Positions 4,641-61,913 of a DNA stretch of 64,000 nucleotides are shown here, in pieces. Location: NCBI GenBank assembly GCA_964035545.1, contig OZ037773.1:9763751-9827750 (forward strand). Reading direction: 5' to 3'. The DNA comes from Bugula neritina. Taxonomy: Eukaryota > Animalia > Bryozoa. The notes under the pieces are model-generated. The model saw only the letters and a program-made list of their open reading frames with translations, ran no database searches and was not told the DNA's origin. Position numbers and translations under genes: made by a program. Every line of letters begins with the position of its first letter. Positions within the stretch are counted from its first letter, which is position 1.

Positions 4641-7600
4641 TCAGTTGCTACAACTCTCAGTAGAGTTGCATGTTTTTACAAGATCTACTCTCAACTCTTC
4701 AACAAAGATGTGGAATGATGACTCCCAGCCAGTGAAAGCATTTGATGTCTTGGTATGGCCATAACATTTACCAACTGCGTAAGAGATGGCATGACTTCCA
4801 GCTGGTATGTTATGGCAGATTCCGCTCACTAAAACAAAAAATGCATTCTCTAGATATGATAGTGATTTGGTTTGTAAAGCTGAAAAAAAATAAAGTTGAA
4901 ACTAAAAAAATAAATTGTGAGAAACATCAAAACCGGATATGCATTGCAAATGAAACTTTTTTTGTCGTTTTCGAATGACTCAATTAAAATTCAAATGCTC
5001 ACAATAATTTAATTCACTGTGAATAAAGGATTCACTTGGTGACGGACAATTTTATTGTATTTTTTGTTTATTTCAATAATTTATACTGAAAACAAAGCTA
5101 AATTAAATTGTCAGAATATCCTAATATTTGTGCTATTGAAATTTGTAAGTAGTATATATGTAATGAAAACATGCAAAAAGTTTTGTTAGCTTTACTTGCA
5201 TGCATACAGCTAAATATACCGATATAAAGTTGCTTCCAATATTATACATCTATAATACATTATGTGTATAAATAAAAAAAATTTAGGTATCCAATAAAAT
5301 GTTTGGCGATCAGTAATTTTTTTAGCATGACATGTAGAGTATAAGTGAAAAATTTAAGATGAACCAATATATATAATTTCTAAAACAAACACTCTTAACT
5401 CATGCCTTGTCATAAGTCACAACAATTTTGTATTCTTAACATGATGATCACTGAACAAAAATTAATTTAAGAATTCACCTTGCATTGGAGAATGTATAAT
5501 GGCATGGTAGGTAAAGTCAATGATTCCGTCTATTGCTCCTGGAGTTGTGCACTCGGAACCATCTATCTTAAAGTACCTGAGTAAAACACATGACCTCTCA
5601 ACATAAATATATTTATTTTAGTGTATTGAATACGCTCCGCTCTAAAATAGTTTCTATGCATAGTAAAAGAGTTCATTGAAAATAATTCAATCAATTATCA
5701 GCTTGTCCTTATTAAGAGTTATCTGCACCTGAATGCACTAAATTATCGTTAAATTTATATCTCCATTAATTGGTTCAGTGGATTTACTTCTTTATGCTGT
5801 TTATCCGGCAGCAAAATAGTGTAAACATGTTAGCAAGTTAGTTTGATTTATTTTACTCTACTAACTGGATTTTAGTTTGTATTTTTAGTGCAACTGAAAT
5901 CATTAGTCGTACCATCTTCCACATCTAGAGTTAATCGTCAGATTAGGAAATATTTCATGATCGCCACTAGCAGTTAGTCTGAGTCCAGTGTCTGCATACT
6001 CCTTCACATAGGTTATGGTGAACAAATCTCCTTCATCATCCATCTTTTCACTTTCTGGGTAATGGAATCTCTCCAGGTTACCACTGTGACTACGGTACAT
6101 CTTCTGATTATGCAGTGTTACTATAAACAGAAGTAAATATTTTTCAAACATAACATTGAAAAAAATTTTTTTGCAGTTTATTTACTGGATTTAAGTTTTC
6201 ACAACTACTCAGTAATGATTTTATGGTTTTTTCTGTTATAAAACATTTTTAAGGAAACATGGACGTATATTCTTAGGTTTGACACTCTTTGTTGTTTACA
6301 AAATGATAGCGGTTTAAAGATTTTAAATGATATTTCAATTTCTATATAATAACATACTATATTAGCGTATTGCAAGCATGAATTCCAACTACTTAGCAAA
6401 ATAAAATGGCGTTCCCAAAACCTATCAAACTATATCTTGCAACGAACTATATTTTTGTATTTTTGGTAAAACTTGTATGAAAAGTTCATAATTCATTTAA
6501 GCTATTAAAAGGGGCTATAGCTTACCGCCCCCCCCCCCCCTATTATAATAAACTATATGGATATAGTATCGTTACCTCCATCAACAGGATGCCCTGTTCT
6601 CACTTCTTCAATGTGCAGACGAGAAGGGGAGTTAAACCCACCGGATACAGTTCTGGTGAACTCACTGTAATAGTCACCTATACACTCGCCAACATAAATC
6701 CCAATTTTGTGAGTACCCTTAGGTAATTGGTTGTTGCATATTCCTTCCACTAAAGCACACAGCAGAATTATGCAAGTCATATTTTCAAGCACTATAACCT
6801 TGCTCACACAATTCAGGCTTACAAAAGATATTATAAGCTGATGATGGATTAATTATGAATTTATATATGTGTAAAATATTTATAAGAAAAAATTATGACA
6901 TCTTTTCATGCTGTTTCCTGCCAAGTTTTGCCAAACCAGCTAGTCTACAATATGAAGGCAACAAATTATAGAGCAATTAGGCGCTTTTCATACTTACTGG
7001 TTCTCACTCGTTTTTGCTCTCTTGCACAACTGTAAGTTTTAGCTGTTAAAAAAGCTAGGACAAAGCCAATATCAGGAGAGCACTCAGTTTCTCCTATCTT
7101 GACAAACCTGTATATAGTATAATAGAATAAATCTGATTAATAATTTACCTAGTTTGAAATGGATTTTATACAACTATCATTTGAGAGACCAACCATCTAG
7201 CACAGAGGTACCAATGTCCAGTATCAGGCATGATCACAGTTGTCAGAGCGTTGTACTTGATTCTCAGACTAGTGTCGTCTTCCACCTTGACATAGTCAAC
7301 TTCCTAGAGAAATATTTACCATTCTTATAGATATAATAAAATTTTGTTATAAACTCTGAAAAAAATTATTTTTGCAAACTAGATAAGACCAATATATAGC
7401 AGTTTGAAAAAACTGTTTTTTCTATAGTCAATCAAAGCACACTGTATGGTGAGCAAAAAGAGCTTGTGCTAAAAGTCTCTGCTTTTGCCTAATTAATAAG
7501 CACCGATAGCAAAACTAGTCTATTTTAATTTATATTATGTTTTTTTACAAGCAATTGAGTTATATAATACTTTTACTATCCCAGGGAATTTTTTGGAAGC

Positions 7601-60200: not shown

Positions 60201-61913
60201 TAGAAGAAAGCTGAATAATTTAAAATTAACATCTTATTTTGCAAATTTGGGTAGAAGAAATTTTAATAAATTCCTAAATTTTTGTTATTAATTTTTAGTA
60301 AAAACAATTTTTTTTAATTTAGGTATATGCCTTATTTTTCTACTTATAAATTTTCTTCATTAATGGTTCCTTAAAATTATTTATAGGACATTAAATAATG
60401 ACGTAAACATTGTGAATAATTATTGATATATACTTATTTTCTCCAGTAATATCCCGTAACCAGAAGATGTTCAGAAGTCACAGTGGTAATCTGGAGAGAT
60501 TCCATTACTGGGCAAGTAATAAAGATGATGATGTGGAAGATCTGTACACCATAACTTATGTGAAGGAGTATGCAGACACTGGACTTAGACTCACTGCTAG
60601 TGGAGACCATAAAGTATTGTTTAACCGCAGTGCTGACTCTTTCTCAATTGCACGGTGGTAAGACTGATTTCTGGTTCGCATGTGAGTGTACATTTAAATT
60701 GAGAAAGTCAATGAGACTAGGTAATTTAGAAACTATATTTTGCTCAGATTCAGAGGACCACGTCATACTCATTGAAATAGCATCATGCAGATTAATAAGG
60801 AAACAGTATTGCTTAAATGAATTCTGTAGCCGAATGAGCTTACAACCAATATACACATTGTGGTTGAGGCAATGGTATGGAATCTGTTTACTATAGGTTT
60901 ACTAACATAGCACACTGCTATATGCTAAAGCCTTTGTTTGTATTGCAATTTTTATTTTTGTGCAGGTACTTCAAGATAGATGATTCTGAGTGTACATCGC
61001 CTGGAACAATAGATGGATTCATGTATTTTAACCACTATGTCGATATGCATTTACCAATGCAAGGTAGCTCATTTTGTATTTTCATACTTATATAATTGTT
61101 TAATCTGAATTTTATTTTTATAGCTCAAAATAATTTTCGGTTTTATAATTTTGCTAAATTTTAATTTTTAACTGTATAATTCGTTTTTCTATGTGTCGGT
61201 AAAAAACTGAAAAACTTAGAGAATTTGAATGATATTCAAAGGTATATAACATTTGAGTTTTTTGCATGTTTTTATACACATAAAGCTATGCAACTCACAT
61301 ATTTAGGTTATGGTAATGACTATTAATTGATCGGTATATTTAAACAAGCTAGATTACTACATCTTAACATATCAGGAGTTCATATTTAGTTTAATATATC
61401 AGGGTGATTTGACAACTTAGCTCAATTCCAGTTTTAATTTCTGCTGTGCATATATAAAGAGATATAACACATTATTATCGCAAGTGCACTGTTTAAACCA
61501 AATACTAAACAATACATTATATATATCATTGTAAGTATTTGAGTTTTGTGGGCTATTGGGAAAAGGCACAAGTGTATATAAGGATGCTTCTTTACAAATA
61601 TTCCGCATATACTCTTGACACTATAATGTCTTCAGAGCTTTTTTAGTAGCTCTAGCTTTTCCTCAACACAAATTGCTTTTAAAGCACAACTTTAGTTTTT
61701 ATATTTATTGTTTCAGTGAGTGGAGTTTGCCACGGGATATCAACAGGTACTCACACCATTACCTACGCAGTTGGCAAAGTTGATGGCTTAGACAATTCTA
61801 ATGCTTTCACTGGCTGGGAGTCGTCCTTCCACATTTTTGTCGAAGAGTTGAGAGTAGACCTTGTAGAGATATGCATCTCTATGAATTATGAACTTGCGAA
61901 CTGTAGCAACTGA
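51250..61913 (+). CDS. Secreted protein paralog C (~638 aa): signal peptide, PAN/apple-like domain, Cys-rich module, 3 tandem CTHRC1 C-terminal-like domains
   Basis: 14 coding exons: 51250-51337, 52388-52555, 53705-53805, 54596-54686, 55275-55375, 55778-55976, 56136-56294 (GC donor), 57213-57325, 58585-58694, 59307-59416, 59971-60141, 60447-60657, 60966-61063, 61717-61913 (1917 nt, in frame). N-term [29 protein letters not shown]. Confidence 0.85.
52961..53067 (-). mobile_element. Degenerate copy of tRNA-derived SINE family 1
   Basis: aaataattgccccca..attcaaacc...gtgcgcta...ggc..ctgggt.aact aligns with 22765-22856. Confidence 0.45.
56420..56946 (-). mobile_element. Penelope-like (Naiad-type) 3' fragment, second subfamily, in an intron of paralog C
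   Basis: 56946-56764 encodes [60 protein letters not shown], homologous to the C-terminus of the 16282 ORF; hammerhead in 3' UTR; ends at (TA)n 56342-56419. Confidence 0.85.
56474..56518 (-). ncRNA. Minimal type I hammerhead ribozyme motif
   Basis: ACAC-CTGAGGA-GTGCAG ttta CTGCAC-GAAA-CTATATA-GTC-GTGT; palindromic ACTATATAGT stem III, GUC triplet. Confidence 0.8.
56944..57054 (+). mobile_element. ~115-bp hammerhead-containing non-autonomous element (copy 3, 5' hairpin decayed)
   Basis: tatgctttagta...aaggtgtgggccatggtactctgttctgtgctgatgaggggacaaatcccgaaacagctgctgtccacagattgag then (TA)n. Confidence 0.8.
57003..57049 (+). ncRNA. Minimal type I hammerhead ribozyme motif (sense to paralog C pre-mRNA)
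   Basis: As 12536-12582 with stem II GGGG/TCCC (one G-U wobble). Confidence 0.8.
57995..58126. repeat. (TA)n microsatellite
   Basis: Direct inspection. Confidence 0.95.
59716..59910 (-). mobile_element. tRNA-derived SINE, family 2
   Basis: A-box-like TGGTCGAGAGG, B-box GGGTTCGAACC, 29-bp block ggaagagcatccagtcataattgctcctg identical to the 3911-4110 copy. Confidence 0.7.

Follow-up and report, generated by a model that had tools for sequence, protein, structure and literature searches.

Loop variation in tandem CTHRC1-domain paralogs of the bryozoan Bugula neritina: relaxed constraint and a few candidate selected codons at the predicted apex of a probable C1q-like head

Do protein segments that differ strongly between tandem paralogs, within a conserved framework, owe their differences to diversifying selection or to weaker constraint? 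This question is raised by a 64-kb, AT-rich stretch of the genome of the bryozoan Bugula neritina (C9:9763751-9827750, GC content ~0.28-0.32; hereafter the window), which holds three complete paralogs of a 14-exon type, one on the minus strand (A) and two on the plus strand (B and C), together with the 5' end of another paralog, D. An initial annotation of these genes had described an almost invariant framework, interrupted by segments of constant length that differ completely between the copies, and had interpreted the segments as diversification of a ligand-binding face, similar to that of complementarity-determining regions (CDRs) and of invertebrate recognition families such as C1qDC and FREPs. 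However, a conserved frame with differing loops in old paralogs is not itself proof of diversifying selection, as unequal purifying selection gives the same picture. The results below point to the second process as the probable main cause, with the variable segments being apex loops under relaxed constraint on a C1q-like head made of three CTHRC1 domains, to which a few selected apex codons of domain 1 would be added.

Exon models were built by six-frame comparison of A, B and C, each boundary being then set by splice signal and phase (Table 1). The motifs quoted in the initial annotation were found at their places, in exons of three paralogous genes with agreeing splice sites and phases; the signal-peptide exon (E1) of gene B was not located in the window. 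The shared layout begins with a signal peptide, continues with a PAN-like module (exons 2-3) and the product of a Cys-rich exon, and ends with three CTHRC1_C domains, encoded by exons 5-7 (domain 1), 8-11 (domain 2) and 12-14 (domain 3). Membership of the CTHRC1_C family (PF25815) was established by Pfam searches run per exon and not on joined spliced models. In gene A these gave matches on exons 6, 7, 11, 12 and 14 with scores of 23.7-45.3 bits, those of exons 7 and 14 alone passing the cut-off of 27, and when combined, the exon pieces of each gene span profile positions 1-137 three times over. No Pfam match to C1q was obtained for the window exons at E up to 1 or for their homologues at E up to 0.01, nor was a fibrinogen-related or immunoglobulin domain matched in the window exons or homologues, so that by Pfam the genes belong to neither the C1qDC nor the FREP family. 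A run of four or more Gly-X-Y triplets, as expected for collagen, was not found in any exon of A, B or C. PAN_1 (PF00024) was not matched by exon 2 of gene A alone, the module being split over exons 2 and 3 and searched exon-wise only; homologues of the same layout matched it with 21.7-25.8 bits against a cut-off of 21.4.

Exon 6 and exon 14 each match 36-37 places in the 216-Mb genome, mostly in tandem arrays (C9, C5, C3 and C6), and the exon 6 profile matches 378 proteins in a representative protein library. One of the external proteins, P0001, is named CTHRC1, comes from B. neritina and is 81-96% identical to the exons of one gene of this genome, whereas P0003 and P0002 are uncharacterised proteins of the brachiopod Lingula anatina. 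P0003, P0005 and P0002 each contain PAN_1 and three CTHRC1_C domains (Pfam; 249-260 bits, three stretches), and a homologue search with P0005 returned only P0005 itself and one Lingula protein. These matches place A, B and C, as old tandem copies, in a family that occurs in lophophorates (bryozoans and the brachiopod Lingula). The age of the copies is evident from their silent divergence, the synonymous distance (dS) of the framework being 0.63 between A and C, 1.0 between A and B and 1.1 between B and C.

The variation of the segments was analysed in a set of 17 genes, consisting of A, B, C and 14 further close paralogs from which exons 5-8 and 12-14 were extracted, whereas exon 10 of domain 2 and the PAN module were compared among the window copies alone. 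The description of the segments as completely different is roughly right for A, B and C (4/37, 9/37 and 7/37 positions identical, 11-24%), but a consensus is kept across the 17 paralogs, from which the window copies A and C are outliers. Mean pairwise identity in the larger set was 0.41, 0.46 and 0.61 for segments 1, 2 and 3, respectively, and the first five residues of segment 2 are common to ~70-80% of the paralogs; these residues and both ends of segment 3 are beta strand in the structural model described below. Likewise, the framework is conserved but not almost invariant, as the rest of domain 1 is only 66-77% identical among A, B and C. Constant segment length was confirmed in domain 1, save for a one-codon deletion in one of the 17 paralogs, but in domain 3 the corresponding loop shows a length variation of two codons.

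The selective regime was measured with our own Goldman-Yang type codon likelihood with F3x4 codon frequencies, in which the M0 model matches IQ-TREE to 0.001 (-4105.326 and -3788.302). The overall ratio of non-synonymous to synonymous rates (omega) was 0.28 under M0, and Nei-Gojobori pairwise values were 0.3-0.77 in the segments and 0.14-0.38 elsewhere, at all levels of divergence. When segments and the remaining codons were given separate values, omega was 0.57 vs. 0.20 in domain 1 (likelihood ratio test statistic, LRT, 108 over one omega, p 2e-25) and 0.56 vs. 0.21 in domain 3 (LRT 78, p 8e-19). However, omega = 1 for the segments was also rejected, both in domain 1 (LRT 34.5, p 4e-9) and in domain 3 (LRT 31.5, p 2e-8). 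For segment 4, in exon 10, the non-synonymous distance (dN) among the three window copies was 0.60-0.86, below a dS of 0.73 to saturated. In a young clade of eight genes on C5, amino-acid changes per site reached 0.84 in the segments and 0.28 in the framework, against a neutral expectation of 1.47, whereas silent changes per site were 0.324 and 0.328, respectively. The equal silent change implies that there is no extra mutation input and no targeted mutation in the loops. Therefore, the segments as wholes are under purifying selection, with weaker constraint than the framework.

The position of the segments was examined on an AlphaFold model of residues 160-603 of the Lingula homologue P0003, obtained with an alignment of 51 relatives. 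The model (predicted local distance difference test, pLDDT, 80; predicted template modelling score, pTM, 0.82) shows eight long strands per domain, and as a whole its three domains superpose on single-chain C1q/TNF trimers (Foldseek, then VIA-align) with Z 22-26 and a root-mean-square deviation (rmsd) of 3.5-3.8 over 336-347 residues. These trimers include adiponectin (4dou; Z 25.8, rmsd 3.8, 342 residues), the C1q head (5hkj; Z 25.6), Cbln1 (5kca; Z 24.5) and APRIL-BAFF-BAFF (4zch; Z 22.1), and the best unrelated structural match had Z 7.7. The model makes it most likely that the three domains of a single chain come together as a three-lobed head of the C1q/TNF type, the fold having been found on the P0003 homologue and not on the window proteins themselves. 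Consecutive strands of a jelly-roll are antiparallel, and both chain termini of each C1q-head domain lie at the base. With this arrangement, AB, CD, EF and GH would be apex loops, and BC, DE and FG would be base loops. By this strand order, the variable positions would all lie at one end of the domain, and in this respect the initial annotation appears to have pointed in effect to the right face.

Identity between external full-length proteins and window exons was 29-60% over short stretches, with ambiguous domain assignment. As these proteins are too distant for reliable exon alignment, the loops were mapped onto the model through the conserved framework motifs, and the structural classes were transferred to the paralog alignments in the same way. 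In domains 1 and 3, respectively, omega was 0.15 and 0.16 for strands, 0.17 and 0.30 for base loops and 0.60 and 0.57 for apex loops. Equality of apex and base loops was rejected in both domains (p 1e-14 and 1e-4), the former evolving 2-3.5 times faster in terms of omega, and omega = 1 for the apex loops was rejected as well (p 2e-7 and 8e-8). The mean column entropy followed the same pattern, with 1.2-1.3 bits in apex loops, 0.6-0.8 in base loops and 0.4-0.5 in strands. The variation was uneven between lobes, as the entropy of the AB loop was highest in domain 1 (1.81 bits) and lower in domains 2 and 3 (0.53 and 0.82, respectively).

Site models revealed an additional signal in domain 1. Model M2a was favoured over M1a with the 17 genes (LRT 14.4, p 7.5e-4; 2.5% of sites at omega 6.7), with the ten youngest genes (LRT 20.4, p 3.7e-5) and with a separate tree per exon (LRT 12.3, p 0.002), whereas no omega-above-1 signal was found in domain 3 (p 0.49 and 0.86). 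The candidate codons are listed in Table 1. For the CD-loop codon, which underwent five replacements in the eight-gene C5 clade, the posterior for omega above 1 was 0.90, 0.995 and 0.98 in these three analyses, respectively. The corresponding values for the GH-loop codon, which lies outside the segments of the initial annotation and has a column entropy of 3.0 bits, were 0.98, 0.997 and 0.99. The two AB-loop codons depended on the tree, with posteriors of 0.99 and 0.80 for the 17 genes and of 0.63 and 0.98 for the ten young genes, and lost support with an exon-specific tree. The omega of the replaced apex codons was ~7-13, and all candidates lie in apex loops, with none in base loops or strands. 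The adaptive component, which is only moderately secure, is limited to two to four codons at the apex of lobe 1. The site-wise dN/dS check suggested along with the initial annotation had a mixed outcome, as two to four codons of domain 1 fit omega above 1 but whole segments stay below 1 and domain 3 contains no such codon.

The interpretation that we consider probable combines both components. Long divergence (dS ~0.6 to above 1) under unequal purifying selection would have produced a conserved frame with variable loops, strands and base loops evolving at omega 0.15-0.30 and apex loops at ~0.6 with the same silent rate throughout, while two to four apex codons of domain 1 would have been replaced repeatedly among recently duplicated copies. 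The consequence would be a germline-encoded set of heads with apical surfaces that differ between paralogs, as in the lectin-like C1qDC proteins of bivalves.

Several points weigh against this interpretation. The modelled Lingula protein is only ~30-40% identical to the window genes, and the assignment of loops to the apex rests on strand order and on the position of the termini in C1q heads, not on coordinates. A grid test resembling fixed effects likelihood (FEL) gave four sites with p below 0.1, approximately the number expected by chance, and none survived correction for multiple testing. Moreover, the site models were fitted without recombination, and gene conversion among the paralogs could inflate their signal. 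The two latter points also bear on the alternative that survives best, albeit as an unlikely one, namely that the loops matter little and drift under relaxed constraint only, gene conversion or the fitting of short alignments having produced the apparent selected sites. This alternative agrees with the loop omega below 1, with the occurrence of gene conversion in the family, with the loss of support for two of the four sites under exon-specific trees and with a parsimony count in which two sites had five changes against 1.47 under neutrality, each with p 0.017 uncorrected. However, artefacts would have to reproduce the M2a signal in three data sets and to return the same two codons each time, with posteriors of at least 0.90 that rise to at least 0.98 in both young-gene analyses, and would have to place every candidate in the apex loops.

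Less probable still is the proposal of the initial annotation, according to which the loops as wholes are CDR-like hypervariable regions under diversifying selection on a ligand-binding face. The clustering of the loops at one domain end and the few sites with an entropy of 2.9-3.0 bits and a fitted omega above 1 are in agreement with it, but segment omega was 0.56-0.57 with omega = 1 rejected at p ~1e-8, silent rates were equal, and 12 of the 37 segment codons are individually under purifying selection in the FEL-like test, with the consensus being kept across the paralogs. In addition, domain 3 gave no signal, its AB loop is conserved, as is that of domain 2, and the mean column entropy of ~1.3 bits is far from the 4.1 possible for 17 sequences. 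Neither a loop-wide omega above 1 (0.56-0.60 found) nor a raised mutation input, either of which would characterize hypervariable loops, was detected.

It is very improbable that gene conversion has homogenised the framework while the loops escaped. Conversion may have acted on exon 3, where A and C are 98% identical, flanks included (dS 0.05, against 0.3-1.0 in other exons), but in the CTHRC1 domains silent divergence is alike in framework and segments, it is implausible that conversion tracts would leap over 30-40 nt at a time and the framework is conserved as protein, not as DNA (framework dS 0.6-1.1). Mutational hot spots in the loops were rejected because silent change per site is equal in loops and framework. 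Finally, the idea that some copies are decaying pseudogenes and their differences noise, to which the premature stop of L043, the lost stop codon of L042 and the truncated exon 7 of L015 lend some colour, can be dismissed for the window genes, as the exons of A, B and C are intact with matching phases and overall omega is 0.28.

Apex loops under relaxed constraint with a few selected codons have precedents and differences in known systems. One of them is the Cthrc1 family, which has the same C-terminal domain (PF25815) as the window genes, a domain that has been modelled as C1q-like and trimer-forming, and which has undergone lineage-specific tandem expansions, one of them in a brachiopod (Leclere et al., 2020, PMC7058181). 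That article makes no mention of bryozoans, and no paper joining CTHRC1 and bryozoan biology was found in a literature search. In Cthrc1 proper, each chain combines a short collagen Gly-X-Y stalk with a single C-terminal domain, which trimerises, whereas the window genes lack a Gly-X-Y run and encode chains in which three different domains accompany a PAN-like module. The arrangement by which Leclere et al. recognise the family, Gly-X-Y upstream of a single C-terminal domain, is accordingly absent from A, B and C.

The evolutionary mode resembles that of the bivalve C1qDC family, secreted proteins with a C1q fold which in oyster show tandem duplication and mostly purifying selection, with episodic positive selection at 4-11 sites per cluster (Gerdol et al., 2019, PMC6835236). 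That family differs in having the Pfam C1q domain, in belonging to another phylum and in carrying one domain per chain, three of which assemble into trimers; moreover, fewer candidate selected sites (2-4) were detected in the window family and in one of the three domains only. With the single-chain trimers of C1q, adiponectin, Cbln1 and the TNF family, the homologue model superposes over all three domains at a sequence identity of 7-8%, and the lobes are non-identical, as are those formed by the C1q A, B and C chains. Structures 5hkj, 4dou, 5kca and 4zch are laboratory constructs or assemblies of separate chains, whereas the window family would be, from the model, a natural single chain. The resemblance to snail FREPs and vertebrate antibody CDRs goes no further than the principle of variable loops carried by a conserved scaffold, as the window family has no fibrinogen or immunoglobulin domain, equal silent rates and a loop omega below 1.

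If the apex binds ligands, this would be a second, independent C1q-fold repertoire beside that of bivalve C1qDC, tandem-expanded and tuned at few surface sites, belonging to a different sequence family and to a phylum with almost unstudied immunity. The natural single-chain heterotrimer design would be unusual and would fix the order of the three lobes. A more far-reaching reading, which we regard as doubtful, is that the germline of bryozoans and brachiopods encodes a set of recognition heads, each a natural single chain of C1q-like form made of three CTHRC1 domains. In this reading, positive selection would be separating recent copies from one another at the apex of lobe 1, and perhaps also in their PAN module, and the proteins would serve the innate recognition of microbes, symbionts or neighbouring colonies. 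In any case, the analysis results in a short, concrete list of codons for mutation or comparison (Table 1).

Table 1. Coordinates in the window of variable segments, candidate codons, genes and exons (E); CDS, coding sequence
Feature	Coordinates	Strand	Remarks
Segment 1, 12 codons after NIRHYW	A 10195..10230; B 25140-25175; C 55334-55369	A -; B, C +	Domain 1, AB loop and first two residues of strand B
Segment 2, 11 codons after LRVIIHM	A 9636..9668; B 26722-26754; C 55835-55867	A -; B, C +	Domain 1, end of strand C and CD loop
Segment 3, 14 codons after IEML	A 9528..9569; B 26821-26862; C 55934-55975	A -; B, C +	Domain 1, end of strand E, EF loop, start of strand F
Segment 4, 21 codons between ECSP and RVRT	A 7011..7073; B 29535-29597; C 59341-59403	A -; B, C +	Domain 2 (exon 10), strand E and EF loop
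CD-loop candidate codon, domain 1 (E6 column 24)	A 9651..9653; B 26737-26739; C 55850-55852	A -; B, C +	Site models
GH-loop candidate codon, domain 1 (E7 column 29)	A 8934..8936; B 27345-27347; C 56225-56227	A -; B, C +	Two residues before conserved G-W
AB-loop candidate codons, domain 1 (E5 columns 24, 26)	A 10218-10216, 10212-10210; B 25152-25154, 25158-25160; C 55346-55348, 55352-55354	A -; B, C +	Tree-dependent
Gene A	4641..14275	-	14 exons; CDS 1887 nt (multiple of three); all introns AG/GT, phases fit
Gene A E1-E5	14275-14203, 13188-13021, 11611-11511, 10573-10483, 10289-10189	-	
Gene A E6-E10	9725-9527, 9025-8870, 8351-8242, 7303-7194, 7107-6998	-	
Gene A E11-E14	6749-6576, 6120-5913, 5576-5479, 4828-4641	-	
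Gene B	22506..32437	+	Exons 2-14; phases as in A and C; all introns AG/GT
Gene B E2-E6	22506-22673, 24480-24580, 24812-24902, 25081-25181, 26665-26863	+	
Gene B E7-E11	27256-27405, 28140-28252, 28725-28831, 29501-29610, 29737-29907	+	
Gene B E12-E14	30910-31108, 31607-31704, 32244-32437	+	
Gene C	51250..61913	+	14 exons; CDS 1917 nt (multiple of three); introns AG/GT except E7 donor
Gene C E1-E5	51250-51337, 52388-52555, 53705-53805, 54596-54686, 55275-55375	+	
Gene C E6-E10	55778-55976, 56136-56294, 57213-57325, 58585-58694, 59307-59416	+	
Gene C E11-E14	59971-60141, 60447-60657, 60966-61063, 61717-61913	+	
Paralog D, PAN-module exon E2	422..583	-	tblastn; remainder of gene precedes window start

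The PAN-like module (B 22506-24580; A 13188-11511; C 52388-53805) was the most divergent part of the proteins, with an identity of 30-34% between B and A or C and of 37-46% between D and the other three copies, compared to 66-77% in the CTHRC1 framework. In exon 3, dN was approximately equal to dS between B and either A or C, with dS near saturation. The module may matter more for specificity than the loops of the initial annotation. Between A (11467-11645) and C (53667-53849), an identity of 91-98% extends over exon 3 and the adjacent intron sequence, with an exon dS of 0.05 compared to 0.3-1.0 in other exons, which looks like a recent, local gene-conversion tract between copies in opposite orientation and 40 kb apart.

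For paralog D, the single exon in the window (E2) is 46%, 37% and 45% identical to E2 of A, B and C, respectively (tblastn, E 4e-12 to 6e-10), and exon 6 of this gene was found upstream of the window, at C9:9760717-9760902. Next to its PAN exon there is a tandem repeat at 1039-1246, with 1039-1147 and 1131-1246 being 88% identical.

Two particularities were observed in gene C. Its domain 3 has lost two Cys together, the one before the conserved R-W being replaced by Ile (60647-60649) and the one after V-G-x by Val (61779-61781), both of which are kept in A, B and nearly all paralogs; the joint loss suggests that the two Cys form a disulfide that gene C gave up. Its exon 7 ends at a GC donor (CAG|GCAAG, 56294-56296), at the site homologous to the donors of A and B, with an alternative GT donor 12 nt upstream, after 56282. 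Damaged-looking members of the family were also found, with a premature stop in exon 14 (L043), absence of the usual stop and a run-on of 34 codons (L042) or a truncated exon 7 (L015).

The remaining features of the window are repeats. An Rfam tRNA match of 34 bits was detected inside intron 2 of gene B (22772-22842, minus strand). This sequence is 88-97% identical to copies near 12472-12705, 15539-15823 and 56944-57173; as these similar copies lie at other intronic and intergenic places, the element is probably a tRNA-derived short interspersed element. Between A and B, a 905-nt inverted repeat, 96% identical, occupies 15962-16866 and 17531-18427 and may be a foldback element or a transposon; the open reading frames (ORFs) in it (434 and 289 aa) had no usable Pfam match. 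ORFs in the 33-51 kb region of the window are short. Long (TA)n tracts in introns are read as Tyr-Ile repeats at 8826-9782 (minus strand), 2227-2483, 26136-26430 and 30142-30705, and in gene A such a tract creates a false ORF of 318 aa extending across intron 6 from exon 6 into exon 7.

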